From: Azolla caroliniana
Taxonomy: Eukaryota > Plantae > Polypodiophyta
Assembly: GCA_043228905.1 (NCBI GenBank)
Contig: JBHGNT010000011.1
Location: 19,468,001 to 19,532,000, forward strand
DNA: 64,000 bases
Direction of reading: 5' to 3'
The notes below the pieces were generated by a model. It did not search any database, was not told the DNA's origin, and was given only the letters and a program-made list of their open reading frames with translations. This document shows positions 12,995-62,593 of the stretch, in pieces. Numbering within the stretch: the stretch's first letter is position 1; each line of letters begins with the position of its first letter. A program made the translations under genes and the position numbers.

Positions 12995-12996
<2 letters not shown>

Positions 12997-27083: not shown

Positions 27084-30000
27084 ATGAGAAAGATGAAGAT
27101 CCAACAAACCCACAAGCATAGTCCCATTGCATTTGTTGAATTACTCAAGGCTTGCGCCATGAAGAAGGATCTTCATGAAGGTGCTCGTCTCCATGCACAC
27201 ATCCTGGAGCACCATGGCCTGCTCGAGAAGAGCCCCCGCATCGCCACCACTCTCATCAGCATGTATGCCAAATGTGGTGCGATCACGAAAGCCCGGCAGC
27301 TGTTTTGGGAACTTCCTGTTCGGGACGTTGTCTCTTGGAATGCCCTCATTGCTGGGTATGCCCAACAGGGGCAGCCTCATGAAGTTTTTATCCTTTTTGA
27401 AAGGATGCGAAAGGATAGATTGTCGCCAGATGGAGTCACCTTCACATGTGTTCTCAATGCGTGTAGCAGCATCGGAGCTCTTGATAAGGGCAAAGAAATT
27501 CATGATGAGATTGTCCATAGAGGCTTGTTGGAGAGAAATATTATGCTGGGCAATGCTTTGGTGGATATGTACGCAAAATGTGGTATGTTTGCAAAAGCAC
27601 GAAGCGTGCTTGAAGAACTCTGTATTCGCAATGTAGTCACGTGGAATGCGCTTATTGCAGGGTATGTCCAACATGGGCAAGGTCATGAAGCATTGCAAAG
27701 CTTTATACAGATGCAAAAGGAAGGCGTTGCCCCTGATGGAGTCACCTTCATTTGCATCCTGAAGTCTTGTGCTAGCACAAGGGATATCAATAAGGGCAGA
27801 AAAATTCATGATGAGATTATAACTAGGTGTTTGCTGGAGAAAAATGTTGTGCTTGGCAATGCTTTGGTGGATATGTATGCCAAATGTGGTCATCTGATGA
27901 AAGCAGCACAAGTTCTGGAAGAACTTCCTGTGCGAAATGTAGTTTCTTGGTCTACCCTAATCTCAGGGTATGTCCAAGCAGGGAGAGGTCATGAAGCTTT
28001 AAACTGTTTTGCACTGATGCAAAGAGAGGGCATCTCTCCGAATGCGGTAACATTCAGTTCCATTCTGAAGGCATGTGGTATTACAGGAGCTATTGACAAG
28101 GGCAAACAAATTCATGAAGAGGTGGTTAATAGGGGCTTATTGCTGAAAAGCGTCATGCTTGGCAATGCTTTGGTGGACATGTATGCTAAATGTGGTGATC
28201 TTTTTCAAGCAAAACAAGTGCTCGAAGAGCTTTCTCTTCGAGACATATTCTCTTGGTCTGCCTTAATTGCTGGATATGCTCAAGAAGGACAAGGACATGA
28301 AGCACTCAACTGTTTTGCAAGGATGCAAAAGGAGGGTCTCTCTCCTGATGGGGTCACTTTCATTTTACTTTTGAAGGCTTGTGCCAGCATAGGGGCTATT
28401 GACAAGGGTAGGCAAATTCATTATGAGATTTTGAATAGGGGATTACTAAATGATAGCATAGTGCTTGGCACCACCTTAGTGGATATGTATGCTAAATGTG
28501 GCATACTTGCAAAAGCACAAGAAGTTCTTGAAGCTCTTCCTGTTCGAAATGCAGTGTCCTGGTGTGCACTAATTGCAGGTTACACCCAGAAGGATCAACC
28601 TCATGAAGCACTCAACTGTTTTGAGAAGATGCAAAAGGAGGGTCTGTCCCCTGATGGAATTACCTTTATCTCTATCTTGAAGGCCTGTGGCAGCATAGGA
28701 GCTCTCGAAAAGGGTGAACAAATTCATGAGGAGATTGTCAAGAGGGGTTTGCTGGAGAAAAATATTGCTCTGGGAAATGTATTAGTAGATATGTATGCCA
28801 AGTGCGGTGCACTTGTAAAGGCTCAACAAGCGCTTGAAGATCTCCATGTTCGTGATATAGTTTCTTGGAATTCATTAATTGCAGGGTATGCCCAACATGG
28901 GCAAGGTAGTGAAGTACTAGACGCGTTTGAACAGTTACAACAGGAGGGTCTTTTTCCTGATTGTGTCACCTTTGCTTGCATCTTAAAAGCATGTGGTAAC
29001 ACAAAAGCTATTGATAAGGGCGCACAAATTTATGAGGCAATTGTGGGCAGGGGATTTCTGAAGTCAAATACTGTGCTTGGAACTGCAGTAGTGGATATGT
29101 ATGCCAAAGGTGGTGTGCTTACTAAAGCACGGAAAGTACTCGAAGAGCTTCCTATTCGAGACACAGGCTGTTGGTCTGCACTCATTGCAGGGTATGCCCA
29201 AGAGGGGCAGAGCCATGAAGCATTGAACTGTTTTGAACAAATGCTAAAGGAAGGCCTCTCTCCTAATGAGGCTACCTTAATTTCCATTTTGAAAGCTTGC
29301 AGTAGCATAGGAGCTAGTGGTAAGGGGAAACAAATCTATGATGAAATCGTTAGTAGGGGCTTGCTTGAAAACAATATCTTGCTTGGTAATGTTTTGGTGG
29401 ATATGTATGCCAAATGTGGTCTGTTTGCAAAAGCAAAAGAAGTGCTTGAAGGCCTTCCTGTCCGGAATGTGGTTTCATGGAATTCACTTATTGCAGCATA
29501 TGCTGAAAAGGAAGAAGGGCATGAGGCACTAAATTGCTTTTCTCGGATGCAAAGGGATGGCCTTCATCCAAATGATGTCACTTTCACTTGCTTGTTGAAG
29601 GCTTGTGGCAGTATTGGAGCTATTGACAAGGGCAAACGAATTCATGATGATGTTATCAGTGAGAACTTGCTAGAGAAAAATGTCATACTAGGCAATGCTT
29701 TGGTGGATATGTATGCCAAATGTGGAATGCTTGCAAAAGCACAAGAAGTGCTTGAAAATCTTTGTTTGCGAGACACCATTTCTTGGTCTACAATGATTGC
29801 AGGGTATGCTCAAGAGGGGTATTCTCATCAAGCACTGAGATGCTTTGAACAAATGCAAAGGGAGGGTCTCTGTGCAAATGAAATAACCTTTCTATCTTTG
29901 CTGAATGCATGCAATCATGCAGGGAAATTGGATGAGGCCCAAACATATTATGAGACTATGAGCAGAAAGTATGGGATTACGCCCTCATTAGAGCACCATG

Positions 30001-30353
30001 TTTGCATGGTGGTAGTTTTTGGATGTGCAGGATGTTTAGACAAAGCGATGTCAATCATTAAGACAATGCCGTATTCTAATGATCCATCAGTTTGGCTTGC
30101 ATTATTGAGTGCTTGTAGAAAATGGGAAAACGTCAAGCTTGGACGATTTGCATTCAGTAAAATAATAGAACTAGATAACAATCTTCCTGCAGCCTATGTC
30201 CTTATGGCTAATATATACATAGCTGCTGGCATGCAAGAGGATGCAGAGGAGGTTGAGAACATGAGAGTGAAGAATGCTGTTTGTACTAAGCCATGTAGAT
30301 CCTGTGTCAGGAGGTTAACTGCCAGTACAAGTGGATGTGAATGGCCCTGTTAA
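27084..30353 (+). CDS. PLS-class PPR protein 1 (9 S-P-L units, E1-E2, no intact DYW), 1089 aa
   Basis: MYAKCG motif recurs at exact 306-nt spacing (27261, 27567, 27873, 28179...); ends with L2-S2-E1-E2 (VWLALLSAC.., AAYVLMANIY). Confidence 0.95.
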   Translation: MRKMKIQQTHKHSPIAFVELLKACAMKKDLHEGARLHAHILEHHGLLEKSPRIATTLISMYAKCGAITKARQLFWELPVRDVVSWNALIAGYAQQGQPHEVFILFERMRKDRLSPDGVTFTCVLNACSSIGALDKGKEIHDEIVHRGLLERNIMLGNALVDMYAKCGMFAKARSVLEELCIRNVVTWNALIAGYVQHGQGHEALQSFIQMQKEGVAPDGVTFICILKSCASTRDINKGRKIHDEIITRCLLEKNVVLGNALVDMYAKCGHLMKAAQVLEELPVRNVVSWSTLISGYVQAGRGHEALNCFALMQREGISPNAVTFSSILKACGITGAIDKGKQIHEEVVNRGLLLKSVMLGNALVDMYAKCGDLFQAKQVLEELSLRDIFSWSALIAGYAQEGQGHEALNCFARMQKEGLSPDGVTFILLLKACASIGAIDKGRQIHYEILNRGLLNDSIVLGTTLVDMYAKCGILAKAQEVLEALPVRNAVSWCALIAGYTQKDQPHEALNCFEKMQKEGLSPDGITFISILKACGSIGALEKGEQIHEEIVKRGLLEKNIALGNVLVDMYAKCGALVKAQQALEDLHVRDIVSWNSLIAGYAQHGQGSEVLDAFEQLQQEGLFPDCVTFACILKACGNTKAIDKGAQIYEAIVGRGFLKSNTVLGTAVVDMYAKGGVLTKARKVLEELPIRDTGCWSALIAGYAQEGQSHEALNCFEQMLKEGLSPNEATLISILKACSSIGASGKGKQIYDEIVSRGLLENNILLGNVLVDMYAKCGLFAKAKEVLEGLPVRNVVSWNSLIAAYAEKEEGHEALNCFSRMQRDGLHPNDVTFTCLLKACGSIGAIDKGKRIHDDVISENLLEKNVILGNALVDMYAKCGMLAKAQEVLENLCLRDTISWSTMIAGYAQEGYSHQALRCFEQMQREGLCANEITFLSLLNACNHAGKLDEAQTYYETMSRKYGITPSLEHHVCMVVVFGCAGCLDKAMSIIKTMPYSNDPSVWLALLSACRKWENVKLGRFAFSKIIELDNNLPAAYVLMANIYIAAGMQEDAEEVENMRVKNAVCTKPCRSCVRRLTASTSGCEWPC

Positions 30354-31727: not shown

Positions 31728-32149
31728 ATACAAAATCTTTTGGAGCATCAAAATTTCACTGTACACATTTTTAAGAGCTGGAGAAAAATAGTTACTCTCT
31801 CATAGCTTCAACCTTCGGGGTGTAAACAAATATCGACTTTCATGATTTAAACCTTCTCACCCTCGTACATGCCAGCAGCTGCATAAATGATAATGGTACA
31901 CTTTTAAGAGTTGGACAAATAATTACCCTCTCCTTTGACTCTTGTAACTTCAATCTTCTGCTCGTCCTCATACATGCCCAAGACTGCATAAATGTTAGCC
32001 ATTAGAACATGGGCTGGAGCAAGATTATTATCTAATTGAATCACTTTATCAAAAGCTAATCACGCAATCTCCACCTTTCTCCATTTCTTACAAGAAACCA
32101 AGAGTGCAAGCCATACAAAATCTTTTGGCAACTATACACTCTCAAAGCT
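31728..32149 (-). pseudogene. Duplicated, degenerate copies of the E1/E2-coding 3' end of PPR gene 2
   Basis: 31937-32117 repeats 32177-32357 (240-bp offset); 31795-31890 is a further partial copy of 32137-32234. Confidence 0.85.
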
Positions 32150-34123
32150 TCAACCTTCTGAAAGTAAACAATTGTTGATTCTCATAACTTCAACCTTCTG
32201 TTCATCCTCATACATGCCAGCCGCTGCATAAATGTTAGCCATAAGAACATAGGCTGGAGCAAGATGATTATCTAATTGAATTGCTTTATCAAAAGCTAAT
32301 CTCGCAAGCTCCACCTTTCTCCATTTCTTACAAGAAACCAAGAGTGCAAGCCATACAGAAGAATCATCAAGATATGGCATTGTTTTGATCACCGACAACG
32401 CCTTACCAAAGCAACCTGCAAATCCAGAAATCACCACCATGCAAGTATGGTGCTCTATCTTCGGTATTACCCCGTATTTTCCACTCATATTCTCATAATA
32501 GGTTTGGGCCTCATCCAATTTCCCCGAATGACCACACGCATTCACAACACACAACAAGGTGATGTCATCTGGGCAGATGCCCTCCGTTTCCATTTGTGCA
32601 ATACAACACAATGCTTTACATCCTTGTCCTTGTTGTGCATACCCTCCGAGCAGTGCATTCCAAGAGACAACATCTCGAATAGGAAGCTCTTCAAGCACTT
32701 GGTGTGCTTTTGTAAGCAAGCCACATTTGGCATACATATCCACAAGAGAGGTGCCAAGCACAACATTGTTTTCCAGAAAGTGCCCCTCAAGTATCTCTTC
32801 GTGTAGTTTTTGGCCCTTTTCAATAGCTCCAATACTTGCACATGCCTTTACAATACAATTGAAGGTGATCTCATTTGGAGATAGTCTCTCCATTTGCATC
32901 CGTGCAAAACAATGGAGTGTCTCATGGTCACGTCCCCTTTGAGCATATCCTGAAATTAACGAATTCCATGTGACTATATCTCGTGTTGGAAGTCTTTCCA
33001 GCACTTGCTGAGCTTCTGCAAGTGCACCAAATTTTGCATACATATCCACCAATGTAGTGCCAAGCACAATGTCTTTCATGAGCAATCCCTTACTCACTAT
33101 CTCACTATGAATTTTGATACCCTTCGTAATATCTCCTATTTTTGTGCATGCCTTCAGAATGCAAATGAAGGTTACAATACTTGGCGAGATACCCTCCCTT
33201 TGCATCTGTTGAAAACAGTTAATGGCCTCATTACCATGTCCTTCTTGAGCATATCCACCAATAAGTGCATTCCAACAAACTACATTTCGTAAAGGAAGTT
33301 CTTCCAGCACATCCTGTGCTTTCACAAGCATACCACATCTTGCATACATATCCACCAAAGCAGTGCCAAGCATAACATTTTCCTCTAGAAAAAACCTATT
33401 AATGATCTCTTCATGAATTTGTTTGCCCTTTTCAATAGCTCGTATGCTGCCACAAGCCTTCAGAATGCAAATGAAGGTGACATCATTGGGCAAGAGGCCC
33501 TCTCTTTGCATTTGTTCAAAACAGCTGAGTGCTTCATGACCTTTGCCTTCATGAACATATCCTGATATCAGTGCTGTCCACGAGATGACATCTCGAACAG
33601 GAAGTTCCTCAAGCACTTGTCGAGCTTTTGTAAGAACACCACATTTGGCATACATGTCCACTAAAGCATTGCCAAGCACAATATTTTTGTCAAGCAAGCC
33701 CCTATTAATGATCTCATCATGAATTTGTTTGCCCCTATCAATGGCCCTTATGCTACCACAAGCCTTCAAAATGCAAGTGAAAGTAACCCCAACTGGAGAG
33801 AGGCCCTCCCTCTGCATTCTATCAAAACAATCTAGTGTTTCATTAGCATACCCCAGTTGGGCATACCCTGTGATGAGAGCATTCCAAGAGATGACATCTC
33901 GAACTGGGAGGGTTTCAAGGACTCTACGAGCTTTTGCAACAGCACCACACTTGGCATACATGCTAATCAAAGCACTGCCCACATATGAGCTGCTCTTTCC
34001 CAGAAGAAACCGATGCTTGAGAATTTCCGCATGAAGTGCAGAACCTTGTTGCAGATCCTTCTTCTTGGCGCAGTCCTTCAGTAAACCCACGAAATCGAAA
34101 TCATTCTTGTTTATAATAGCCAT
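32150..34123 (-). CDS. PLS-class PPR protein 2 (5 units, E1-E2), 657 aa
   Basis: Open ORF, five MYA(K/R)(C/F)G repeats, E motifs. Confidence 0.95.
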   Translation of the reverse strand: MAIINKNDFDFVGLLKDCAKKKDLQQGSALHAEILKHRFLLGKSSSYVGSALISMYAKCGAVAKARRVLETLPVRDVISWNALITGYAQLGYANETLDCFDRMQREGLSPVGVTFTCILKACGSIRAIDRGKQIHDEIINRGLLDKNIVLGNALVDMYAKCGVLTKARQVLEELPVRDVISWTALISGYVHEGKGHEALSCFEQMQREGLLPNDVTFICILKACGSIRAIEKGKQIHEEIINRFFLEENVMLGTALVDMYARCGMLVKAQDVLEELPLRNVVCWNALIGGYAQEGHGNEAINCFQQMQREGISPSIVTFICILKACTKIGDITKGIKIHSEIVSKGLLMKDIVLGTTLVDMYAKFGALAEAQQVLERLPTRDIVTWNSLISGYAQRGRDHETLHCFARMQMERLSPNEITFNCIVKACASIGAIEKGQKLHEEILEGHFLENNVVLGTSLVDMYAKCGLLTKAHQVLEELPIRDVVSWNALLGGYAQQGQGCKALCCIAQMETEGICPDDITLLCVVNACGHSGKLDEAQTYYENMSGKYGVIPKIEHHTCMVVISGFAGCFGKALSVIKTMPYLDDSSVWLALLVSCKKWRKVELARLAFDKAIQLDNHLAPAYVLMANIYAAAGMYEDEQKVEVMRINNCLLSEG

Positions 34124-36514: not shown

Positions 36515-38791
36515 TCATCTTCCTAAGCCATTCTTCACCCTCATGTTCTCAACCTTTTCTGCATCCTCTTGCATTCCAGCAGCTGCATAGATATTGGCCA
36601 TAATGACATATGCTGATGCAATATCATTACCCACCTGTATTACATGATCAAAAGACAGTCTCCCAAGTTTTACATAACCCCATTTTCCACAAGCACCCAA
36701 TAGTGCAAGCCAAAGTGATGGGTCATCCAAATACGACACTGATTTAATCACTGCAGTTGCCTTATCGAAACACCCAGCCTGTCCAAAAGAAATCACCATG
36801 CATGTATGATGCTCTATCTGTGGTGCTATTCCATATTTTCTGCTCATGTTCGCATAATATGTTTCTGCATCATCCAACCTCCCAGAATGACTACATGCAT
36901 TTAGTATACATAAGAAGGTAACATCATTTGGAGAGATGCCCTCTCTTTGCATTTGTTCAAAACAGTTGAGAGCTTCATGATGATAACCTTTTTCAGCATA
37001 CCCTGCAATCAGTGCAGACCAAGAGACTGTGTCTCGAACAGGAAGCTCTTCGAGCACTTCTTGTGCTTCTCCAAGCATACCACATTTCACATACATATCC
37101 ACCAAAGCATTGCCAAGCGTGATATTTTTCTCCAGAAAACACCGACTCACAATCTCTTCATGAATTTGTTTACCCTTACAAATAGCTCCTATTCTGCCAC
37201 AAGCCTTCACAATAAGAGTGAATGTAACCCCATCTGGGGAGAGCCCTTCCCTTTGCATCTGCGCAAAACAGTTGAGTGCTTCATGTCCTTGGCCCTCTTC
37301 AGCATACCCTGCAATTAGTGCGTTCCAAGAGATCGTGTCCCTTACATGAAGGTCTTCAAGAATTTTCTTTGCATTTACAAGCATACCACACTTGGCATAC
37401 ATATCCACCAGAGAGGTCTCGAGCAGAATATTTTTACCCAGCAAATCTTTGTTAACAATTTCATAGTGGAATTGTTTACCCTTGTTGATAGCTATTGACG
37501 TGCCACAGGCTTTTAAGATGGCAATATAAGTGACCCCATCTGGGGAGATGCCTTCCCTTTGCATCCGTTCCAAGCATTTTAATGCATCATAACCCCTGCT
37601 TTCTTCAACATACCCTGCAATGAGTGTATTCCAGGAGATTATGTTTCGTCCTGGATGGTCATCGAGTATCTCATGTGCTTTTTCTAGTCCACCACATTTT
37701 GCATACATGTCAATCAAAGCATTTCCAAGAACAATATTCTTCTTCAACAAACCCCTTCTGATGATCTCACTGTGAATCTCTTCACCCTCGCTAAGAGATC
37801 CTATGTTGCCACATGCCTTGAGAATACAAGTGAAGGTGATCTCACTTGGAGTGAGACCCTCTCTTTGCATCAGTGTAAAACAGCTGAATGCTTCATGGCC
37901 TCGATAGCTCTCTTGAGCATACCCTGCAATCATAGAGTTCCAAGAGACTGCATTCCGAACAGGAAGCTCTTCGAGCAAGTGCCAAGCCTTTGTGATTGCA
38001 CCACATTTTACATACATATCAACCAAAGTATTGCCAAGCACAACATTTTCCTTCAACAATCCCCTCTTTATAATCTCTTCATGAATTTTTTTGCCCTTGT
38101 TGAGTGATTTTATGCTCCCACAAGACTTCAAAATACCAGTGAAAGTGACCTCATCTGGATAGAGGCCCTCCCTCTGCATCTCTTCAAAACATCGGAGTGC
38201 TTCATGGCCTCGCCCTTTCTGAGCATATGCAGCAATGAGAATGGACCAAGTGACTACATTCCGAGAAGGAAGCTCCTTAAGCACTTGTTGTGCTTTTGCA
38301 AGCATGCCACATTTAGCATACATATCCACCAGAGCATTCCCAAGAACAATATTTGTTTCCAACAAGCCTCTATGGACAATCTCTTCATGAATGAGTTTGC
38401 CCTTGTCAAGCGCTCTTGTGATGGAACAAGCCTTGAGGATGCAAGTAAAGGTGAAGTCATCCGGAGAGAGGCCATCTAGTTGCATCCTATGAAAACTGTC
38501 CAGTGCTTCATGACCTTGACCTTCCCAGGCATACCCTGCAATGAGAGCATTCCATAAGACGACATTCCGAACGTGAAGGTTTTCAAGGACTTTCCGAGCT
38601 TCCCTAAGCGCTCCACATTTGGCATACGTTTGTATCAATGTGGTAGATGTACAAGGTTTTGTGTCCAAAAACCCAAGTTCCAGGAAGTGAGCATGTAGCG
38701 TGAACACTCCACTGAGGTTTTCCTTGTGGCCACAACTCTTGAGTAAGTCTGTAAATGTAAAATCCTTCTTGTAACATTCTCTTCTTCTCAT
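36515..38791 (-). CDS. PLS-class PPR protein 3 (6 units, E1-E2), 758 aa
   Basis: Open ORF with six S-P-L units and E motifs. Confidence 0.95.
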   Translation of the reverse strand: MRRRECYKKDFTFTDLLKSCGHKENLSGVFTLHAHFLELGFLDTKPCTSTTLIQTYAKCGALREARKVLENLHVRNVVLWNALIAGYAWEGQGHEALDSFHRMQLDGLSPDDFTFTCILKACSITRALDKGKLIHEEIVHRGLLETNIVLGNALVDMYAKCGMLAKAQQVLKELPSRNVVTWSILIAAYAQKGRGHEALRCFEEMQREGLYPDEVTFTGILKSCGSIKSLNKGKKIHEEIIKRGLLKENVVLGNTLVDMYVKCGAITKAWHLLEELPVRNAVSWNSMIAGYAQESYRGHEAFSCFTLMQREGLTPSEITFTCILKACGNIGSLSEGEEIHSEIIRRGLLKKNIVLGNALIDMYAKCGGLEKAHEILDDHPGRNIISWNTLIAGYVEESRGYDALKCLERMQREGISPDGVTYIAILKACGTSIAINKGKQFHYEIVNKDLLGKNILLETSLVDMYAKCGMLVNAKKILEDLHVRDTISWNALIAGYAEEGQGHEALNCFAQMQREGLSPDGVTFTLIVKACGRIGAICKGKQIHEEIVSRCFLEKNITLGNALVDMYVKCGMLGEAQEVLEELPVRDTVSWSALIAGYAEKGYHHEALNCFEQMQREGISPNDVTFLCILNACSHSGRLDDAETYYANMSRKYGIAPQIEHHTCMVISFGQAGCFDKATAVIKSVSYLDDPSLWLALLGACGKWGYVKLGRLSFDHVIQVGNDIASAYVIMANIYAAAGMQEDAEKVENMRVKNGLGR

Positions 38792-44998: not shown

Positions 44999-45248
44999 TT
45001 AATAGCCACCACACTCATTTTCCATCTTCACAATATCAGTGCAGCCTGAATCACAACAACCTTTAGCTTTGGGCTCTTGGTATAAATGATGTCATATTAT
45101 GGCCGTCATTACAGATAGTGATATTCTTGACAAGATGTAAAGCTTCTCTTTTACATATGCTACTGAGAGCTGAAGCAATTGCAAGCTTCTTGAAATGCCT
45201 TTCTTCATTCACTTGATCCAGAATATTATGCCTAATTAAATGCACACT
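44999..45248 (-). pseudogene. Decayed DYW deaminase remnant, in frame behind the stop of PPR gene 5
   Basis: After TGA (45249-45251) the same frame reads SVHLIRHNILDQVNEERHFKKLAIASALSSICKREALHLVKNITICNDGHNMTSFI; then frameshifted EDGK-ECGGY* at 45029-44999. HxE has become HFK and CxxC has become CNDG. Confidence 0.85.
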
Positions 45249-47960: not shown

Positions 47961-49590
47961 GTCTGGGAATGGAGAGCCACGCACAGCCTCGTCATTACTG
48001 ACTTTGACTTCTCCAAGGACTGACTCCAGCCATCATGGACCTGTGTATCAAATCAAACACAGGTTTGCTTTCAGAAAATATGATCAGGCATATGTGACCC
48101 ACGATCTCCTCCCGAGTCCAATGATTTTGTGCAACTTCGTGTTGCCAATTGCACCTCATGAATCGCATGGCCGGGATCGAATTTAGGTTCTCTCAAAAGT
48201 ATGAGTTTGATGCTACTTATGTAAAAAAGCATTACGCCAACAGGCAATGAGAGAAGAAAACAGAAACATAATTTTCAAAATAAAACTTCTAGGCTTAATC
48301 CTAAATATCTATTTCGATGATCTTACTATCTGAAATGGAGTGATCCTCAAGATGGTTTTTTACGAGCACGAAGTACATAACTAAGATGTACGAGATCAAT
48401 TGTGGTGACAAGACATGATATTAGTGTTGGTTGCCAATAGCCATGGTGGAGAGAGGCTATAATAAAGTTCCCTGAGTACACATGGGTGTCCTCAAGTAGA
48501 TTGGACATGGCAAGTAATGACTCAATGGCAAGTGAACATCGTCTTTTCACAAAAAAAAGAAAAAAGTGTATCTTATTCTTCAACCTTAATAGGGGAGAAT
48601 ATACCTTTTCAATTTTGATCTGGAAGTTTACATGCAATCCTCCATTCAAAATTCGATAACAATTAAGCAAACATACTAGCTTTAAGTGACAAATTCTTCT
48701 CTATCCCTTTGATACACTTCTAGTCCCATTAATAGATGCACCAAGCAAAGTCCGTGATCTTGAATTTGGAGCTTGGCATAGAATACAATAAGGTGTTGAA
48801 ATATCTTAGATCTATTAGATATGCATGCATCCCTAAGGCCACTCGTGATAAGTCAATTGCACTTTGAATAATCCATTCTCAAGGTTTTCAATATAATCCA
48901 CATAAAAAACATTCCATGTCGTACAACTCCTATCCCCATAGTGTTGTCAATTGAATATTCGCAAACTATTATTGGGGAGAGAAAAGCTCTAATATATCAT
49001 ATTTGCAACAAAGAAGCCACACCTTGTCTTAACTCTATCAAAGCAGGCAATCTTGAGTTGGAACCTGGTCCTAGCATAGAATAGACACACGCAATCTCTT
49101 GCGACATCGCGGTACGACAAATGAATTTTTTGCTTAGCTCCTATCAACACACACAATCTCCCCCCCCCCCACACACACACAATATGGCAAATGAGTCCTT
49201 TTTGGTCTTAACTACATTGACAAATGAGCCATTCCATGTAATCTTGAGTCCAGTGGTAACTTCCCCCAACATCCCATCGCCCTCCTTGTAGCTTACTACA
49301 TTATCATGTCATAGGACTTTACAAGGTCAAAATCTTCGGCAAAGTCCATGAAAGAAGAGTGGTGGCTTGACAATTCTACTTCCCATTCACATACTTCTAT
49401 GTACGTCTATCAACTAACTCTCTCTGCATCATTCCCTACTGGTGTACCTTAATGCAAATTCTCCTTCCCAACACATTTTTTGTCAAAGCTTCCTCTCCAT
49501 CATTTTGCTTGGGTGGATTATGCTGCATGCATCAGATATTGTGCAAAGCTTCTTCTCCTCCATCTTCATAGCAGCAATTGCTGCCGCAGA

Positions 49591-52143
49591 ATGAATGAGA
49601 GTCAATTTGTTGAGCTGCTCAAGGCTTGTGCAACCAAGAAGGATCTCCGTGAAGGCGCTCGACTCCATGCCCACATTCTGGAGCAGCGCGGCCTACTTGA
49701 CACCAGCCCCCACATTGCCACCACTCTCATCAGCATGTATGCCAAATGTGGTGCCATCCAGAAAGCCCATCAACTCTTTAGGGAGCTTCCAAACCGAGAT
49801 GTTGTCTCTTGGAATGCCCTCATTGCAGGGTATGCCCAACATGGGCAGATTCATGAAGCTTTTAACGTTTTGGAAAGGATGAGAAATGATGGCATCTCTC
49901 CCAATCCGATCACTTTCACTTCTGCCTTGAAGGCGTGTGGTAGCTCAGGAAGCATTGGCAAAGGCCAACAAATCCACGATGAGATTGTTGCTAGAGGTTT
50001 TCTTGAGAAAAATATAATTGTGCTTGGTAATGCTTTGGTGGGTATGTATGCAAAATGCGGCATGCTCGCAGAAGCACAACAAATGTTGGAAAGGCTTCCT
50101 ATACGAGATGTTGTCTCGTGGTCTGCACTGATTGCAGGATATGCTGAACAAGGGCATGGTAATCAAGCACTTAGCTGTCTTGATGAGATGCAAAAGGAGG
50201 GAATTACGCCAAACGAGATTACGTTTGTATGTGTTCTAAAGGCTTGTCGCAGCATCAGAGCGATTGAAAAGGGCAAGCAAATTCACAATGAGATTGCCAG
50301 CATGGGCTTGCTGAAGAAAAGTGTTATGCTTGGCAATGCTTTGGTGGATTTGTATGCCAAATGTGGCATACTTGCAAAAGCACAAGAAGTGCTTGAAGAG
50401 CTTCATATTCGAGATGTGGTCTCATGGAATTCTCTAATTGCAGGGCATGTCCTTTGGAATCAAGGACATGAAGCACTCAATTGTTTTGAAAGGATGCTAA
50501 GGGAGAGCGTCTCTCCAGATCAAGTCACATTCATTTGCATCTTAAAAGTGTGCGGACACATAAGAGATCCTGTGAAAGGAAATCAAATTCATGATGACAT
50601 TGTCAATAGAGGTTTATTGGAGAAAAATATTGTGCTTGGCAATGCTTTGGTGGATATGTATGCAAAATGTGGTGTTCTTACGAAAGCAAAACTACTACTA
50701 GACGAGCTTCCTTGTCGTGATGTAGTATCATGGTCTGCTCTAATTGCGGGATATACCCAAGAAGGCCAAGACCGTGAAGCATTGAATTGTTTTGAACAAA
50801 TGCAAAGAGAAGGTGTGTGTCCAAATGCTGTCACATTTATCTGCATTCTGAAGTCATGTGGCAGTATAGGAGCTATTGACAAAGGAAAACAAATTCATGA
50901 TGAAATCATTAACAGGGGTTTGTTGAGTGATAATGCTATTCTTGGTAATGCTTTGGTAGATATGTATGCCAAATGTGGTTTTCTTATCAAAGCACAACAA
51001 GTGCTCGAAGAGCATCCTCGTCGAAATGTTGTATCATGGAATGCACTAATTGCTGGGTATGTCCAGCATAAGCAAGGTCAAGAAGCAATGCAATGTTTTG
51101 AAAGAATGCAGAAAGAGGGTCTTGCTCCAAATGAGGCCACAATCATTTCTATTTTGAAAAGCTGTGGTGACATAGGAGCCATTCATGAAGGCAAACGCCT
51201 CCACATCGACATTGTCAACAATGCATTTCTCGAGAAAAATACTCAACTTGGGAATGCTTTGGTGGATATGTACGCTAAATGTGGATTTCTTGCAAAAGCA
51301 CGCCAGGTGCTTGAAGACCTTCCCAATCGAAATACAGTCTCATGGAATACATTAATGGCAGGGTATACTCAAGATAAACAAGGCCATGCAGCATTGGAAT
51401 GTTTTGAACAAATGCTATGGGAGGGTCACTCACCAGACAATATCACCTTCACATGCATCTTGAAGGCGTGTGGTAGTGTTGGAGCTATCGAAAAAGGAAA
51501 AAATATTCATGATACAATTCTCAACAAGGGGCTACTGCAGAACAGCATTGTGCTTGGCAATGCTTTGGTTGATATGTATGCCAAATGCGGTGCATTTGCA
51601 AAAGCACAACAAGTGCTCAATGAACTTCCTGAGCGAGACACGGTCTCTTGGTCTGCATTGATCTCAGGTTATGCTCTAAGAGGGCATTGGCTAGAAGCAT
51701 TGAACTGTTTTGAACAGATGCAAAGGGAGGGCCACTCTCCAAATGATGTAACCCTCTTATGTGTGTTAGATGCGTGTAATCACTCAGGAAAATTGGACGA
51801 GGCCGAAACATATTATGAAAATATGAGCAAAATATATGGGATCACACCAACATCAGAGCACCACACTTGCATGGTTGTGGGTTTCGGAAGTGCAGGGCGT
51901 TTTGATAAGGTATTGTCTGTAATAAAGAAAATGCCATGCTTTCTCATGCCTTCAGTTTGGCTTAGACTACTAGGTTCCTGTAAAAAATGGGGGAATGTGA
52001 AGCTCGGTAGATTGGCCTTTGATCAAGCAATGAAACTCGATAACACACTTTCAGCAGGTTCTAGTATATATGGAACTGCTGATAAGGTTGAAGCCATGAG
52101 AGAGGATGTTGGTACCAGGGAAAAAACAGAAATGAGTTTGTGA
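49591..52143 (+). CDS. PLS-class PPR protein 6 (7 units, E1, internally deleted E2), ~850 aa from first ATG
   Basis: Open ORF (frame open from 49480; first ATG at 49591; a possible splice acceptor lies just upstream); E2 shortened to LSAGSSIYGTADKVEAM. Confidence 0.93.
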   Translation: MNESQFVELLKACATKKDLREGARLHAHILEQRGLLDTSPHIATTLISMYAKCGAIQKAHQLFRELPNRDVVSWNALIAGYAQHGQIHEAFNVLERMRNDGISPNPITFTSALKACGSSGSIGKGQQIHDEIVARGFLEKNIIVLGNALVGMYAKCGMLAEAQQMLERLPIRDVVSWSALIAGYAEQGHGNQALSCLDEMQKEGITPNEITFVCVLKACRSIRAIEKGKQIHNEIASMGLLKKSVMLGNALVDLYAKCGILAKAQEVLEELHIRDVVSWNSLIAGHVLWNQGHEALNCFERMLRESVSPDQVTFICILKVCGHIRDPVKGNQIHDDIVNRGLLEKNIVLGNALVDMYAKCGVLTKAKLLLDELPCRDVVSWSALIAGYTQEGQDREALNCFEQMQREGVCPNAVTFICILKSCGSIGAIDKGKQIHDEIINRGLLSDNAILGNALVDMYAKCGFLIKAQQVLEEHPRRNVVSWNALIAGYVQHKQGQEAMQCFERMQKEGLAPNEATIISILKSCGDIGAIHEGKRLHIDIVNNAFLEKNTQLGNALVDMYAKCGFLAKARQVLEDLPNRNTVSWNTLMAGYTQDKQGHAALECFEQMLWEGHSPDNITFTCILKACGSVGAIEKGKNIHDTILNKGLLQNSIVLGNALVDMYAKCGAFAKAQQVLNELPERDTVSWSALISGYALRGHWLEALNCFEQMQREGHSPNDVTLLCVLDACNHSGKLDEAETYYENMSKIYGITPTSEHHTCMVVGFGSAGRFDKVLSVIKKMPCFLMPSVWLRLLGSCKKWGNVKLGRLAFDQAMKLDNTLSAGSSIYGTADKVEAMREDVGTREKTEMSL

Positions 52144-52425
52144 TTTGATGGAAGTGGGAATGTTCATTCAATTTCTATTACAGATGCAACACATTTTCAA
52201 AGTAAGATAGGTCTTAAAATATCACAGAATATTTCAAAATGATACACTAAAGAAATTAGCTCCAGCCTATGCCTGCATCAAATACACATCAAAGGGGAAG
52301 TAAACATATTTGGAATAGCATCTATCTTGTCCCTCACCAGCTTCGTTCATGTCATGAATACAGGTGGTTATGGTCAAGAAACCATACCACATGACAGTTT
52401 TGAAGATGACAAACATGATTGGTGG
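52144..52425 (+). pseudogene. Decayed DYW remnant behind PPR gene 6
   Basis: Stop TGA sits where the conserved Trp would be; the frame continues FDGSGNVHSISITDATHFQSKI; later FGIASIL...VHVMN...HDSFEDDKHDWW (52309-52425). Confidence 0.8.
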
Positions 52426-54514: not shown

Positions 54515-55013
54515 CTAGGTCACTCCCAACCCAATATCTAGAAGCTTATACAAATCAAGAATGACAATAATGTTAACTCCATAGAGTAAGTTCGTGGCAT
54601 TTACCTTGCCTTCACTGAATGCTCGTGGATGAAGAGTTTTTTTTTCTTCCAGAATGACCACCAATAAATATTTATGAAGTGATATCTTTATTGGTGTTGT
54701 GGAGGCCTTGATATGCATATTCATGAAAGAAAAAGAGATCAAATCCCTATTCCTTACTGTGTGAAACATCAGACCTTTTGTTGTATCACTATTCTGATAC
54801 ATTCTTTGCAACAATGCAAACTTCAAAATTATTCTCTTTCTGAGATTTTTAAGGACAATTTCCATCATTGCACGCGCTATGAGGATATTTAGACAGCATG
54901 TGTTTTGCATCAGTTTCCATACTCATTCCTGGCTTCTTCAAAGCAGCATTTCTCGCTTTCATGGCTTCTTCAATATTTTGTGCAGCATCCTGCATGCCGC
55001 AGTTGAATAAACG
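54515..55013 (-). pseudogene. Frameshifted E2, PG box and decayed DYW remnant behind PPR gene 7
   Basis: After AYVHV* the frame gives RLFNCGMQDAAQNIEEAMKARNAALKKPGMSMETDA; the 54515-54910 ORF contains KFAL...TTKGLMFHTVRN and LH..AFSEGK, colinear with DYW blocks but without HxE or CxxC. Confidence 0.7.
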
Positions 55014-57578
55014 TTAGACATGTACATAAGCTGCTGCAACAGTCTCATCAAGTCGAATAGCTGAATCAAAAGCTAATCTTCCAAGCTTTACGTTTCCCCA
55101 CTTCCTACAATATCCCAGTAGTAAAAGCCAAACTGAAGGATTCCTACAAGATGGTATTGTCTGAATCACTGACATTGCTTTGTCAAAGCGTCCAGCACAC
55201 CCAAAAAGCCCCACCATGCAAGCATGGTGCTCCAACTCTGGTATAATCCCATATTCTATGCTCATATTCTCATAATATTTTTCGGCCTCATCTAATTTTC
55301 CTGAGTGGCTAAATGCATTCAACAACGAGAGGAAGGTTAACTCGTTTGGAGCAAGCCCTTCCTTTTGCATTTGTTTAAAACAACTCATAGCTTCGGAGTC
55401 CTGCCCCTTTTGAGCATATCCTGCAATCAATGCAGACCAAGAGACAACGTCACGAAGAGGAAGTTCTTTCAGCACTTGATGTGCCCTTGTGAGGACACCA
55501 CATTTGGCGTACATATCCACCAAAGCATTTCCAAGAGCAATATTTGTGCCCAATAATCCTGCATTCACAATCTCATTGTGAATTTGTGTGCCTTTATCAA
55601 TAGTGGCTATGCAACTACAGGCACTTAGGATGCAAGTGAAGGTGACTTCATTTGGAGAGAGTCCCTCTCTCCGCATCAGCGAAAAACAGTCCAGTGCTTC
55701 ATGGCCCTGCCCCTCATGAGTGTAACCTGCAATTAATGCATTCCAGGAGACTGTATCTCTAGCAGGAAGGCCTTCAAGCACATGTGCTGCATTTGCAAGC
55801 ATGCCACATTTGGCATACATGTCCACCAAAGCAGTACCAAGCACAATATTTTTCTTCAAAAAACCCCTATGCATCACTTCTTCATGTATTTGTTTCCCAA
55901 TGTCAGGAGTTCCGATATTGCCACAAGTCTTGAGGATGCATGTGAAGGTGACCTCATCTCCAAAGATTCCCTCTCTTTGCATTCTTTCATAGCAGTTAAG
56001 GGCTTCGTGACCTTGCTCGTGTTGGACACATCCTGCAATAAGTGCATTCCATGATACTATATTTCGAACAGGAAGCTCTTCCAGCACTTGCCATGCTTTC
56101 GTAAGCATGCCACATTTTGCATACATATCCACCGAAGCATTGCCAAGTTCTATGCTTTTCTCTAGCAAGCCCCTCCTCTGAATTTCTTCATGAATTTGTT
56201 TGCCCTTATCAACTGATCTGATGCTTCCACAAGCTTTTAAAATGCAGATGAATGTGACTTCATTGGGACAAAGGCCCTCTCTTTGCATTTGTCCAAAACA
56301 GTTCAGTGCATCATGACCACACCCTTCTTGCACATATCCTGCAATTAGTGCAGACCAAGAGACAATGTCTCGAGAGGGAAGGTCTTCAAGCACTTCCTGT
56401 GCTTTAGCAAGTACACCACATTTAGCGTACATATCAACTAGTGCAGTGCCAAGAACAATGCTGTTCTTAAGCAGACCTCTATTCACGATCTCTTCGTGAA
56501 TTTGTTTACCCTTGTCAATAGCTCCTGTGTTTCCACATGCTTTTAGAATGCAGGTGAATGTGATTTCATTTGGATTGATTCCCTCCACTTGCATCCTTTG
56601 GAAACAATCAAGTGCTTCATGAAATCGCCCTTGCTGAGCATACCCACTGATGAGTGCACACCAAGTAACAGGATTTCGAACAGAAAGCCCTTCGAGCACT
56701 AGCTGAGCTTTTTCTAGTGCACCACATTTGGCATACATATCCACCAAAGCAGTGCCGAGCACAATATCTTTCCCAAGCAAACCTCTGTTGGCGATATCAT
56801 CATGAATTAGTTCACCCTTCTGAAGATCGCCTATAGTGCCACAGGCCTTTAGAATGCAGCTGAAGGTGATCCCATCTGGAGAAAGTCCCTCACTCTGCAT
56901 TCGGTTGAAACAATGGAGGGCTTTGTGGCCTTCCCCTACTCTGGCATATCCTGAAATTAGTGTGGACCAAGACACTACATTGCGGACAGGAAGCTGTTCG
57001 AGCACTTGTTGTGCTCCTGTGAGCACATGACATTTGGCATACATATCAACCAAAGCATTGCCAATCACAATGTTTTTCTTCAGCAGGCCCCTATTAGCAA
57101 TTTCAATATGAATTTGTTTGCCCTTGTCAATAGCTCCGATACCTCCACATGCCTTCAAGATGCAAATGAATGTGACCTTATCTGGTGCAAGGTTCTCCCC
57201 CTGTATCCTTTGGAAGCAGTCAAGAACATGATGGCATTGCCTCTGTTTCACATACCCTGCAAGGAGAGCATTCAAAGAGGCTAAATGTTGAACCGGAAGC
57301 TCTTCAAACACTTGCCTGGCTTTTGCAACTGCCCCGCATTTCATATACATGCTGATTAAAGCACTGGCTACATAAGGGCTTCTTTCGAGCAATCCACAAG
57401 TATTCAGAGTGATATGAGCATGTAGCCTAGAGCCATTATGCAGATCACTCTGCTGACCAAAACTCTTGAATAGCTCAACGAATTTGAAGTCCCGTTCATG
57501 AATGCCATCGTTAGGAACCTGGTTGCATGACTGGCCTGCAGCAGCAGCAGCAGCAGCAGCTCGGTCTTTTCCATCCAT
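55014..57578 (-). CDS. PLS-class PPR protein 7 (7 units, E1, truncated in E2), 854 aa
   Basis: Open ORF; poly-Ala N-terminus; terminates inside E2 through a small deletion. Confidence 0.92.
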   Translation of the reverse strand: MDGKDRAAAAAAAAGQSCNQVPNDGIHERDFKFVELFKSFGQQSDLHNGSRLHAHITLNTCGLLERSPYVASALISMYMKCGAVAKARQVFEELPVQHLASLNALLAGYVKQRQCHHVLDCFQRIQGENLAPDKVTFICILKACGGIGAIDKGKQIHIEIANRGLLKKNIVIGNALVDMYAKCHVLTGAQQVLEQLPVRNVVSWSTLISGYARVGEGHKALHCFNRMQSEGLSPDGITFSCILKACGTIGDLQKGELIHDDIANRGLLGKDIVLGTALVDMYAKCGALEKAQLVLEGLSVRNPVTWCALISGYAQQGRFHEALDCFQRMQVEGINPNEITFTCILKACGNTGAIDKGKQIHEEIVNRGLLKNSIVLGTALVDMYAKCGVLAKAQEVLEDLPSRDIVSWSALIAGYVQEGCGHDALNCFGQMQREGLCPNEVTFICILKACGSIRSVDKGKQIHEEIQRRGLLEKSIELGNASVDMYAKCGMLTKAWQVLEELPVRNIVSWNALIAGCVQHEQGHEALNCYERMQREGIFGDEVTFTCILKTCGNIGTPDIGKQIHEEVMHRGFLKKNIVLGTALVDMYAKCGMLANAAHVLEGLPARDTVSWNALIAGYTHEGQGHEALDCFSLMRREGLSPNEVTFTCILSACSCIATIDKGTQIHNEIVNAGLLGTNIALGNALVDMYAKCGVLTRAHQVLKELPLRDVVSWSALIAGYAQKGQDSEAMSCFKQMQKEGLAPNELTFLSLLNAFSHSGKLDEAEKYYENMSIEYGIIPELEHHACMVGLFGCAGRFDKAMSVIQTIPSCRNPSVWLLLLGYCRKWGNVKLGRLAFDSAIRLDETVAAAYVHV

Positions 57579-58547: not shown

Positions 58548-58625
58548 GTCATTGTGGAATGTAGGGGTTGAACCCATGACCACTTGGTCTCCATTGGGCA
58601 ACCTTATCAGCTAAGCTACATCCAT
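58548..58625 (-). mobile_element. tRNA-derived SINE-like head
   Basis: Minus strand TGTAGCTTAGCTGATAAGG (A-box-like) ... GGGTTCAACCCC (B-box-like) at tRNA-like spacing; no convincing cloverleaf. Confidence 0.5.
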
Positions 58626-59323
58626 ATGGCCTCTCTCTCTCTCTCTCTCACCGTAGTGGTAAGTTATTACACCGCTAGCACTACATCTTGGGTCCGACGC
58701 TCAGTTCTCTCACTTTCTTAGACATTCAGCCACATTTTTCTAAATTCTTTTGAAAATAAGTATGGCAAAATAAGTAGGCAATACAACCTAGTGGATGATG
58801 GACACAATTATTTGCGATGGATCATTTTTATCGTGCTCATATTGACATGGCACAGGGTCCCTACAAAAAGGTGTTGGGCCATGTATGGGGGGTTCGGTGC
58901 CGGAAGGTCAAGGGAGTTAATGGGTGGCCTGATGATGAAGGGCCTGCGAAGCATTGGGCTTGACTTGACCGTGTGTAAGACCCTCCTATATATGTATGTA
59001 TACATAGGACAATAGAAACATAGAGATCAATTTGGTCAATTTGTCTATCATTCTCTCAGTCCCTTGTTAACTAACTCTCCTCCGTGAGACAGAGTTAGTT
59101 ATGACAACATGCCCTCCCAAAGGTCCATCGCCATGCCACTCAACATCAATTCAGCAAACAGAGACAGATTTTGTTTTGGGACAGTTATTATAGCTCCAGA
59201 AATTTTGCCCGACCTATTTTTTTTTTCAAGCAATCGATTTAGCAGACGAGTCCTTTGGTGGAAATTGATGGTGATGGATATGGATATGGATATTTTTACC
59301 ATCCCTCATTTGCTATCACACGG

Positions 59324-62300
59324 ATGATGAAGAGAGCTCCCATGATATCTAATCCTTCCTTTTTCATTAGAACCATATCCAGTACCAAACACCAGAAGCA
59401 TGATGTCATCTTTATGCAGTTACTCAAGGCTTGTGCCAAGAGGAAGGATCTTGCGAAAGGCATTGCACTGCATGTAGATATCCAGAAGAGAGGATTACTT
59501 GGAAAGAACCCTTACATAGGCAGCTCTCTCATCAGTATGTATGCCAAATGTGGTGCTCTTGCAAAAGCTCAGCAAGTTCTCGAAGAGCTTCCAATCCGAG
59601 ATGTCGTCTCTTGGAATGCACTGATCTCGGGGTATGTCCAACAAGGGCAAGGTCATGAAGTATTTAATTTCTATGAAAGGATGCAAAGAGAGGGCCTCTC
59701 TCCAGATGAAGTTACCTTGACTTGCATCTTCAAAGCTTGTGCTCGTGTAGGAGCTATTGACAGGGGAAAGCAAATTCACCACATGATCGTTGATTGGGGC
59801 TTGTTAGAAAAGAATATTGCACTCGGGAATTCTTTGGTTGATATGTATGCCAAGTGTGGCATGCTTGCAAAAGCACAACAAGTGTTCGAACAACTTCCAA
59901 AGCGAGATGTAGCCTCTTGGTCTGCACTAATTGCAGGATATGCCCAAGGGGGTCATGGTGATCAAGCTCTTTTCTGTTTCAAACAAATGCAAAAGGAGAA
60001 TATTCCTCCAAATGAAGTTATCTTCACTTCCATTTTAATGGCCTGTGGAAACACCGGAGCACTTGACAAGGGCAAACAGATTCATGAAGAGATTGTTGCT
60101 AGGGGCTTGCTTAAGCAGAATGTTGTGCTTGGCACTGCTTTGGTGGATATGTATGCGAAATGTGGTGTGCTTGCAAAAGCTCAGCAAGTACTTGAAGAGC
60201 TTCCTGTTCGAAATCTTGTATCTTGGTCTGCATTAATTGCAGGGTATGCCAAACAGGGGCAATGGCATGAAGTACTTGCTTGTTTTCAGAGGATGCAAAG
60301 GGAGGATTTCTCTGCAGATGAGATCACCTTTGCTTGCATATTGAAGGCCTGTGGTATCACAAGAGCCATTGGAAAGGGAATACAAATTCACATGCAGATT
60401 GTGAATAGAGGATTGTTTGAGAAGCATTCTATGCTTGGCAAGGCTATGGTAGATATGTATATAAAATGTGGTATGCTTGAAAAAGCACAAGAACTGCTCA
60501 AACAACTTCATATTCGAGACATAATAGCTTGGTCTGCACTAATTTCAGGTTATGTCCAAGACGGACGTGCTCATGAAGCACTTAATTGTTTTCAACAGAT
60601 GCAAAAGAAGGGCCTCTGTCCAGATGGGGTCACCCTTACATCCATTTTGAAGGCTTGTGGCAGCATAGGAGCTATTGACAAGGGCAAACAAATTCATGAT
60701 GATATTATTAGTAGGGGCTTGTTGAAGGAAAGTATTGTGCTTGGCACTTCGTTGGTGGATATGTATGCTAAATGTGGTCTGGTTACAAAAGCTGAAGAAG
60801 TACTTGAAGAGCTTCCTGTTCGGAATGTAGTATCTTGGTCTGCACTGATTGCAGGCTATGCTCAACAAGGACTATGCCATCATGCCATCAACTGTTTTGA
60901 ACAGATGCAAAGTGAAGGACTCTATCCAGATGTGGTTACCTTTGCTTGTATTTTAAAGGCGTGTGGTAGTACAACAGCTATTGACATGGGCAAAGAGATT
61001 CATTGTGAGATTGTTGATAGGGGATTGCTAGAGAATAGTGTCATCCTTGGCAATGCTTTGGTGGATATGTACGTAAAATGTGGCGAACTTGCAAAAGCAC
61101 AAGATGTTCTTGAAGAGCTTCCTGTTTGGGATATAGTTTCTTGGTCTACACTAATTGCAGGATACGCCCAAGAGGGGAAAGGTCATGAAGCACTAGACTG
61201 TTTTGCACGGATGCAAAAAGAGGGCATCTCTCCAGATGGTGTCACCTTCACATGCATTCTAAATGCCTGTGGCAGTATAGGAGCTGTTGACAAAGGCAAG
61301 GAAATTCATGATGAGATTGTCAGCAAGGGTTTGCTAATGAAGAATATCGTGCTCGGTACTGCTTTGGTGGATATGTATGCTAAATGTGGCCTGCTCGAAA
61401 AAGCACAAGAAGTACTTGAGGAGCTTCCTCTTAGAAATGTAGTATCTTGGTCTGCACTAATTTCTGGTCATGCCCAACAGGGTCAGTGTCGTAAAGCGAT
61501 CAACTGCTTTGAAAGGATGCAAAGAGAGGGCTTCCCTCCAGATGGTGTCACATTCATTTGCATCCTGAAGGCATGTGGCAACACAAGAGATATTGATAAA
61601 GGCAAACAAATTCATGATGAGATTGTTTTTAGGGGTTTGTTGACAGAAAATATCATGCTTGGCACAGCTTTAGTGGATATGTATGCCAAATGTGGTTTGC
61701 TCCCAGAAGCACAGAAAGTTCTCAAAGAACTTCCAAATCGAAATGTAGTCACGTGGAATGCATTAATTGCAGGATATGCCCAAGAGGGGAATGGTCATGA
61801 AGCATTGAACTATTTTGCAGAGATGAAAAGGGAGGGTTTCTGCCCAAATGTTGTCACCCTGATGTGCACCTTGAAGGCCTGTGGTAGCATTGGAGCTGTT
61901 GATGAAGGTATCAAGATTCATGATGAGATTGTTGATATGGGCTTGATACAGAAAAATATAATGCTTGGGACTGCATTGGTAGATATGTATGCCAAATGTG
62001 GCTTGCTTGTGAAAGCAGCCCAAGTCCTTGAGGAACTTCCTGTTCGAGACACTGTCTCTTGGTCAGCATTAATTGCAGGGTATGCCCAAGAGGGCCACTC
62101 TGATGATGCTCTCAGTTGTTTTGCACAGATGCAAAGGGAAGGTATCTGTCCTAATGAGGTAACTTTTCTAGGTGTGCTGAATGCATGTAGCCATACAGGG
62201 AAATTGGATGAGGCCCAAACATATTATGAGAATATGAGCCAAAAATATGGGATCATACCAAAGCTGGAGCATCATGCTTGCATGATTGTGAATTTTGGTC

Positions 62301-62593
62301 GTGCAGGACATTTTGACAAAGCAATGTCTGTGATTAAAACAATGCCATCTTTTAATAATCATTCAATGTGGCTTGCATTGCTGGGTTCTTGTAGAAAATG
62401 GGGAAATGTGATGCTTGGAAAGATGGCTTTTGATAACGTGATTCGTCTCAATAATAATGTTGCATCAGCTTATGCTCTCATGGCTAATATTTATGCAAAT
62501 GCAGGAATGCAAGAGAATGCGGAAAAGGTTGAAGAAGCCACGAGAATGGACAATGAGCTAAACTATAATCAGTTTCTCGAAGCATCATTATAA
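59324..62593 (+). CDS. PLS-class PPR protein 8 (9 units, E1-E2), ~1089 aa from first ATG
   Basis: Open ORF (frame open from 59255; first ATG at 59324); N-terminus MMKRAPMISNPSFFIRTISSTK could be a mitochondrial presequence. Confidence 0.95.
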   Translation: MMKRAPMISNPSFFIRTISSTKHQKHDVIFMQLLKACAKRKDLAKGIALHVDIQKRGLLGKNPYIGSSLISMYAKCGALAKAQQVLEELPIRDVVSWNALISGYVQQGQGHEVFNFYERMQREGLSPDEVTLTCIFKACARVGAIDRGKQIHHMIVDWGLLEKNIALGNSLVDMYAKCGMLAKAQQVFEQLPKRDVASWSALIAGYAQGGHGDQALFCFKQMQKENIPPNEVIFTSILMACGNTGALDKGKQIHEEIVARGLLKQNVVLGTALVDMYAKCGVLAKAQQVLEELPVRNLVSWSALIAGYAKQGQWHEVLACFQRMQREDFSADEITFACILKACGITRAIGKGIQIHMQIVNRGLFEKHSMLGKAMVDMYIKCGMLEKAQELLKQLHIRDIIAWSALISGYVQDGRAHEALNCFQQMQKKGLCPDGVTLTSILKACGSIGAIDKGKQIHDDIISRGLLKESIVLGTSLVDMYAKCGLVTKAEEVLEELPVRNVVSWSALIAGYAQQGLCHHAINCFEQMQSEGLYPDVVTFACILKACGSTTAIDMGKEIHCEIVDRGLLENSVILGNALVDMYVKCGELAKAQDVLEELPVWDIVSWSTLIAGYAQEGKGHEALDCFARMQKEGISPDGVTFTCILNACGSIGAVDKGKEIHDEIVSKGLLMKNIVLGTALVDMYAKCGLLEKAQEVLEELPLRNVVSWSALISGHAQQGQCRKAINCFERMQREGFPPDGVTFICILKACGNTRDIDKGKQIHDEIVFRGLLTENIMLGTALVDMYAKCGLLPEAQKVLKELPNRNVVTWNALIAGYAQEGNGHEALNYFAEMKREGFCPNVVTLMCTLKACGSIGAVDEGIKIHDEIVDMGLIQKNIMLGTALVDMYAKCGLLVKAAQVLEELPVRDTVSWSALIAGYAQEGHSDDALSCFAQMQREGICPNEVTFLGVLNACSHTGKLDEAQTYYENMSQKYGIIPKLEHHACMIVNFGRAGHFDKAMSVIKTMPSFNNHSMWLALLGSCRKWGNVMLGKMAFDNVIRLNNNVASAYALMANIYANAGMQENAEKVEEATRMDNELNYNQFLEASL

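Follow-up and report, generated by a model that had tools for sequence, protein, structure and literature searches.

Ferns hold thousands of PLS-class pentatricopeptide repeat (PPR) proteins that carry neither a DYW nor a DYW:KP domain, as reported for the Salviniales (PMC12548569) and the Schizaeales (PMC13263110), and DYW domains have been proposed to act in these plants as trans donors, in the manner of DYW1 for CRR4 in Arabidopsis (PMC12548569, PMC13263110, both of which cite Gutmann et al. 2020 and Li et al. 2018). Organellar editing in ferns affects thousands of sites and employs few DYW enzymes, and the idea of a guide protein served by a deaminase in trans has so far been based on counts. 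The window considered here, the whole stretch of 64,000 nucleotides (nt) from Azolla caroliniana (assembly GCA_043228905.1, contig JBHGNT010000011.1, positions 19,468,001 to 19,532,000), contains a tandem cluster of eight paralogous PLS-class PPR genes on both strands, with open reading frames (ORFs) of 657-1112 amino acids (aa) in 27084-62593. These are most probably, at a likelihood we put at roughly 0.6, nuclear genes for E-type, DYW-less PPR proteins in which the deaminase decayed and the arrays were kept, the products likely serving as specificity subunits of trans-catalysed editing; that they go to an organelle, take part in editing and have a partner in trans is what we infer.

The locus is a genuine, well-preserved example of a phenomenon already reported across ferns and shows no new kind of system. 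What it adds is support at the level of sequence for an origin of DYW-less genes from PPR-DYW genes, with decay of the deaminase beside an array and E1 and E2 motifs that stay constrained, in the form of the fossil itself, of measured selection with a boundary at the end of E2, and of a cassette-like regularity of the arrays. An earlier sequence-only reading of this DNA had placed the eight long stop-free arrays where the ORF list also finds them; its main inference, that selection kept the arrays as the catalytic module decayed, holds, although its novelty was overstated.

Remnants of the DYW domain

The genes have a common layout: behind a short N-terminus and a partial L-S unit come 4-8 near-consensus 102-aa P-L-S triplets, followed by P2-L2-S2, E1 and usually E2. 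All eight ORFs match Pfam PPR/PPR_2 (E 1e-76 to 1e-149) and seven match E_motif, six above the cut-off and gene 4 weakly, with no listed match for gene 7, whereas DYW_deaminase (PF14432) is matched by none of the eight. The set P2-L2-S2, E1 and E2 is complete in genes 1, 2, 3, 4, 5 and 8; a deletion removes part of E2 in gene 6, and a stop interrupts it in gene 7. The ends were located with a profile of our own, 240 positions covering the end of S2, E1, E2 and DYW and built from 16 DYW-bearing database matches, with which the window was scanned in six frames with stops written as X. On this scale the ORF stops fall at positions ~76-136 of 240, before the DYW catalytic centre, confirming that the ORFs end at differing points between the middle of E2 and the early DYW domain. 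The intact HxE and CxxCH motifs that mark a PPR-DYW enzyme occur in none of the ORFs, and only fossils of them are found, behind stops.

Further tests for such fossils used a DYW-only profile, a fern-only DYW profile (24 frames) and a frameshift-tolerant alignment compared with 200 dinucleotide shuffles. The remnant behind gene 5 is beyond doubt, as the sequence-only reading had it, with E 3e-13 on the general, DYW-only profile, E 2e-19 on the fern-only profile and z = 15 against the shuffles. It lies within the apparent 3' untranslated region, its HxE reads HFK and its CxDCH reads CNDGH. The predicted gene 5 protein itself has an E+-like end, reaching past the PG box, the conserved motif with which the DYW domain opens. 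In gene 6, where a stop replaces the Trp of the PG box, the N-terminal part of a fossil receives support (E 6e-6 on the fern-only profile; z = 2.7, reached by 2 of the 200 shuffles), and the matches further downstream, including the far C-terminal SFEDDK of the sequence-only reading, are not significant. Gene 7 retains only the remainder of E2 and a PG box behind its stop, and the far C-terminal FSEGK proposed for it is unsupported.

The other remnants claimed from the letters alone fared less well. A moderate fossil behind gene 3 is rejected, since its E of 0.047 over 24 frames is not significant; the fern-specific profile found nothing in 24 frames for genes 1, 2, 4, 7 and 8, and the frameshift-tolerant alignment did not rise above the shuffled null for genes 1, 2, 3, 4, 7 and 8. 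The faint fossils assigned to genes 1, 2, 4 and 8 reduce to a trace of a PG box in gene 1, which lies inside the ORF, no DYW remnant being detected behind genes 2, 4 and 8 by any of the profile or shuffle tests. Besides the gene 5 fossil, the DYW-only six-frame scan of the 64-kb window gave one insignificant match (12968-13168), so that neither an intact nor a separate DYW exon is present in the window.

Because of the gene 5 fossil, the ancestor of the family is to be reconstructed with a PG-type (C-to-U) DYW domain, in agreement with the sequence-only reading. The PG boxes left in the remnants read KKLGTSEW in gene 5 and KKPGMS in gene 7; an origin from the DYW:KP (U-to-C) lineage was considered and rejected, there being no KPAxA-type box and the remnants being of the PG type.

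The best database relatives of the cluster are proteins of Adiantum capillus-veneris and Ceratopteris richardii, with 50-60% identity. Nearly all of the fern matches stop somewhere in E1, in E2 or early in the DYW domain, at points that vary, and a full DYW domain is present in only 4. Sister pairs from Adiantum and Ceratopteris have similar end points on the profile (P0001/P0005 at 100/105; P0013/P0058 at 72/73), and P0007 from Adiantum and P0107 from Ceratopteris, which are clade-mates, stop alike at position 64. The DYW-less state therefore appears older than the split of the two genera, and so stable rather than transitional. The eight cluster genes fall in one clade with 99% support, together with truncated proteins from public assemblies, and no DYW ORF was found among the 16 rows of this clade or among its 10 rows in another tree. 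In the sister clades the only full-length DYW ORFs are those of two relatives from public assemblies, P0123 and P0138, which have another residue in place of the catalytic Glu (HSG, HSV) and have lost the terminal DYW; they seem to be pseudo-deaminases that stand between the intact and the truncated forms. The subfamily thus shows every stage of loss, from a dead full-length domain through an E+-like end and an end at E2 to a cut E2. Among the relatives, P0001, P0005, P0078, P0115 and P0120 have a conserved W-rich motif before the first PPR (roughly LW.D....P.WV.EEL.RR) that is absent from the cluster genes, and Pfam PF26713 is listed for many homologs.

Genes 5, 6 and 7 have no stop, frameshift or other lesion in common over the stretch in which their remnants overlap (profile positions 102-143), and this stretch was therefore still open when they separated. 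The claim that the domains were separately destroyed stands to the extent that these lesions differ; separate loss of function is not demonstrated, nor is separate destruction in genes 1, 2, 3, 4 and 8. Since an intact DYW domain is missing from every member of the clade, a single earlier loss with divergent decay fits equally well. On this account, which concerns the history of the genes and not their function and to which we give somewhat less than an even chance, the DYW domain came free of constraint a single time, in the ancestor either of the cluster or of the wider clade, at a time when catalysis may already have been supplied in trans, and the eight ends are the divergent decay of one dead domain. 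The clade without DYW ORFs (16 rows at 99% support; 10 rows) and the sister-clade ORFs P0123 and P0138 already lacking the catalytic Glu (HSG, HSV) both favour it, and the gene 5 fossil, in which ~5 stops have accumulated over some 137 codons, has by our own estimate decayed roughly as far as half the paralog dS of ~1.0 would lead one to expect. A single loss is harder to reconcile with the absence of any common stop or frameshift in genes 5, 6 and 7 at positions 102-143 and with a gene 5 fossil far better kept than anything behind genes 2, 3, 4 and 8; the residues that replace Glu (K, G and V) are each one step from it, yet mutually different.

Constraint and repeat structure of the arrays

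In contrast to the DYW remnants, the arrays are under purifying selection. Across 28 paralog pairs, the C-terminal 230 codons up to E1 gave a non-synonymous rate (dN) of 0.245 and a synonymous rate (dS) of 1.05 by the Nei-Gojobori method (NG86), a dN/dS of 0.24, and E1 and E2 alone gave 0.27 in the six genes having both. The ORFs contain 0 stops in 7057 codons, against ~379 expected from the 0.054 per codon found just behind the stops. Compared with contigs 97-100% alike from four public runs, gene 5 shows 23 synonymous and 13 non-synonymous changes among the differences listed, a pN/pS of 0.16 with a binomial p of 9e-8. Constraint stops sharply at the end of E2, and the proposal that selection kept the arrays is borne out with E1 and E2 included.

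The public-run search returned 16 runs from six studies that contain part of gene 5, their RNA nature being a guess by the search tool, and the contigs of four runs (four studies, four organism labels) were aligned to 44300-50200. These cover only about 44531-48152 and, from about 49567 on, the beginning of gene 6, with no cover in the four runs on 44300-44496 or on the intergenic 1.2 kb at 48240-49420, which is the pattern of transcripts and not of genomic reads; gene 5 thus looks transcribed. A contig of 1304 nt (44911-46229) and another of 771 nt (44831-45601) run colinear across the stop at 45249 and the fossil, so that gene 5 is joined to no DYW exon. In one relative, stretches of 9 nt and 7 nt are deleted and 1 nt is inserted at 44988-45067, in the 3' flank at and just beyond the point where the fossil ends, with no such change in the array. 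The outcomes that the sequence-only reading had named as contrary to its inference are in this way answered: neutral evolution of the arrays is contradicted by the dN/dS and pN/pS values, splicing to an intact DYW exon is contradicted for gene 5 by the colinear contigs and the lack of such an exon in 64 kb, and absence of transcription is made unlikely for gene 5 by the transcript-like contigs.

The arrays of all eight genes follow a strict period of 306 nt (27238-62261). The 51 alignable 102-aa units extracted from them are as alike between genes as within them, both in amino acid identity (58% and 58%) and at four-fold sites (0.48 and 0.49), and between genes the four-fold identity of units with the same index (0.50) hardly differs from that of other indices (0.48). 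Positional orthology of repeat units between genes was accordingly rejected as essentially absent, and because of this whole-array identity is unfit for dating duplications (the proteins as wholes are 55-65% identical); the C-terminal block took the place of whole arrays in the paralog comparison. Together with a number of full units that varies from 4 to 8, the equal likeness within and between genes suggests gain and loss of whole units. Canonical RNA-code pairs (ND, NN, SD, SN, TD, TN and NS at position 5 and the last position) occupy 94 of 102 P and S motifs, variation at the code positions is limited to code-legal residues, and the code string is different in each of the eight genes. The eight comparable natural arrays with different code strings are useful for target prediction and for donor-recruitment assays. 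Contig depth over 46467-46663, within gene 5, peaks in all four runs at up to several thousand-fold. Many of the contigs there, with at least 95% identity, stem from PPR genes other than this one, a sign that these ferns possess a very large family of near-identical triplet units.

Because the 102-aa units are so alike between and within genes, come in sets of 4-8 cassettes and vary in code-legal ways, the cluster might be regarded as a natural cassette system for new RNA specificities, in which gain, loss and shuffling of units supply guides for a small shared pool of enzymes with a DYW or a DYW:KP domain. We regard this as a tentative and rather doubtful extension; if true, it would make the decay of the resident DYW domain the signature of a switch from catalysis in cis to catalysis in trans.

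Function of the encoded proteins

On the preferred account of the cluster, the family descends from a PG-type (C-to-U) PPR-DYW editing factor. The deaminase domain lost constraint and decayed, with lesions that differ among the copies; the array and E1/E2 were kept by purifying selection and changed chiefly at the RNA-code positions. The proteins would most likely recognise organellar transcripts in a sequence-specific manner, as specificity subunits of RNA editing, with catalysis probably provided in trans by a DYW-bearing protein, of which the genome has few. The guide-only editing factors of the sequence-only reading are compatible with this, but the idea is not new, having been proposed earlier for ferns (PMC12548569, PMC13263110).

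Several observations weigh against this account. Six of the eight N-termini have acidic residues among the first ~10 and only 6-40 aa ahead of the first motif, which does not look like a classical transit peptide. E2 is damaged in genes 6 and 7, and E-class factors of angiosperms need E2. The gene 5 counts are of listed differences only, and some of the contigs may come from near-identical paralogs; the evidence of expression likewise consists of contigs of guessed RNA nature, limited to gene 5 and the start of gene 6.

Some of the same observations would fit genes that are functional outside editing, in RNA stabilisation, processing, translation control or the blocking of sites, with no deaminase partner. 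Genes 6 and 7 keep their arrays open without part of E2, no transit peptide is obvious, and many fern relatives end in E1/E2, a state kept in both Adiantum and Ceratopteris (P0013/P0058 at 72/73, P0007/P0107 at 64/64). Against this, E1 and E2 are under as much constraint as the array in six genes (dN/dS 0.27), the family is nested among PG-type editing factors, and editing sites in ferns far outnumber DYW proteins (PMC13263110, PMC12548569), so that a role outside editing is unlikely. Much the least probable is that these are young or transcribed pseudogenes with arrays open by chance, since, although the tails are clearly decayed, gene 7 has its stop inside E2 and PPR families in ferns undergo birth and death, this is already contradicted for the cluster as a whole by a dN/dS of 0.24 at a paralog dS of ~1.0, by the pN/pS of gene 5 among the differences listed (0.16, p 9e-8), by 0 stops against ~379 expected, by code positions restricted to canonical residues and by the transcript-like contigs for gene 5.

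The window and the cluster beside known systems

The features of the window are collected in the table. The tail that follows E2 in gene 4 has no significant homology. Behind the stop of gene 2, the profile scan and the translation reveal two partial tandem copies of its E1/E2 end, interrupted by stops (E 3.5e-16 on our own profile for the one at 31934-32125), which are best described as a local duplication of the 3' end of the gene. The RRM_1 match ~2 kb upstream of gene 1 (E 1e-16) seems to be one piece of a multi-exon gene whose product binds RNA, and it presumably resembles the RRMs of chloroplast ribonucleoproteins. A low-complexity ORF rich in Ser, Asn and His, with no Pfam match, may be due to chance or be part of an unrecognised gene, and 18001-20000 is strongly AT-rich (GC 0.25 against ~0.38 in the surroundings).

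Features of the window, with the end of homology given as a position on the 240-position profile
Feature	Position	Strand	Content and end	End of homology
Gene 1	27084..30353	+	1089 aa; partial L-S unit, 8 full P-L-S triplets, P2-L2-S2, E1, E2	111, inside ORF
Gene 1 PG-box-like degenerate tail	about 30279-30308	+	inside ORF	
Gene 2	32150..34123	-	657 aa; 4 full triplets; end ~6 aa past E2	102
Gene 2 E1/E2-end partial copy	31934-32125	-	behind gene 2 stop	
Gene 2 E1/E2-end partial copy	31619-31693	-	behind gene 2 stop	
Gene 3	36515..38791	-	758 aa; 5 full triplets; end 2 aa past E2	104
Gene 4	40513..42882	-	789 aa; 5 full triplets; E2 end near 40624, then 36-aa tail	101
Gene 5	45249..47984	-	911 aa; first ATG near 47960; 6 full triplets, E1, E2, PG box, ~35 aa DYW N-terminus	214, in frame across stop
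Gene 5 DYW fossil	45002..45248	-	in frame after TGA; 4-5 further stops, small deletions, terminal frameshift	
Gene 6	49480..52143	+	887 aa; first ATG near 49591; 6 full triplets; in-frame deletion in E2	143, in frame across stop
Gene 6 partial DYW fossil	52144..52300	+	N-terminal ~50 residues from PG box, in frame, second stop	
Gene 7	55014..57578	-	854 aa; 6 full triplets; TAA stop within E2 at profile position ~76	120, in frame across stop
Gene 7 E2 remainder and PG box (KKPGMS)	54885..55013	-	in frame behind stop	
Gene 8	59255..62593	+	1112 aa; first ATG near 59324; 8 full triplets; end ~10 aa past E2	102
RRM_1 ORF/exon	24629-25042	+		
Low-complexity ORF	13345-14334	+	329 aa	

Tandem paralogs that diversify fast, undergo birth and death and vary at code positions are familiar from the restorer-of-fertility-like (RFL) PPR clusters of angiosperms, whose genes are P-class and not editing factors. 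The fern cluster resembles these in its tandem paralogs and code variation, but its genes are PLS-class with E motifs. To our knowledge, no DYW partner is known from a fern. Closer in domain content are the E and E+ factors of Arabidopsis, among which CRR4 is paired with DYW1 (PMC13263110) and E+ proteins act with DYW2 and NUWA (PMC11121751). Like the cluster genes, these combine a PLS array with E1/E2 (and, as in gene 5, a PG box) and have no catalytic centre, implying a separate deaminase; the arrays of the cluster, however, are much longer and much more regular, and ferns are without MORF proteins (PMC13386178).

The closest named homologs, Adiantum capillus-veneris GOP47_0005774 (P0001) and Ceratopteris richardii KP509_23G032000 (P0005), are 51-55% identical to gene 5 and share with the cluster the regular PLS triplets and an end 3-16 aa past E2 without a DYW domain, although at 1415-1427 aa they are longer, carry an N-terminal extension with the W-rich motif and belong to a different clade. 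The nearest counterpart as a class is that of the DYW-less PLS proteins of ferns, which have long PLS arrays cut in or after the E motifs, far outnumber the DYW and DYW:KP proteins and are proposed to work with DYW donors in trans, a description that the cluster genes match exactly. The fern reports are counts from transcriptomes and genomes, to which the Azolla cluster adds decayed DYW sequence behind the stops, a tandem arrangement and measured selection.

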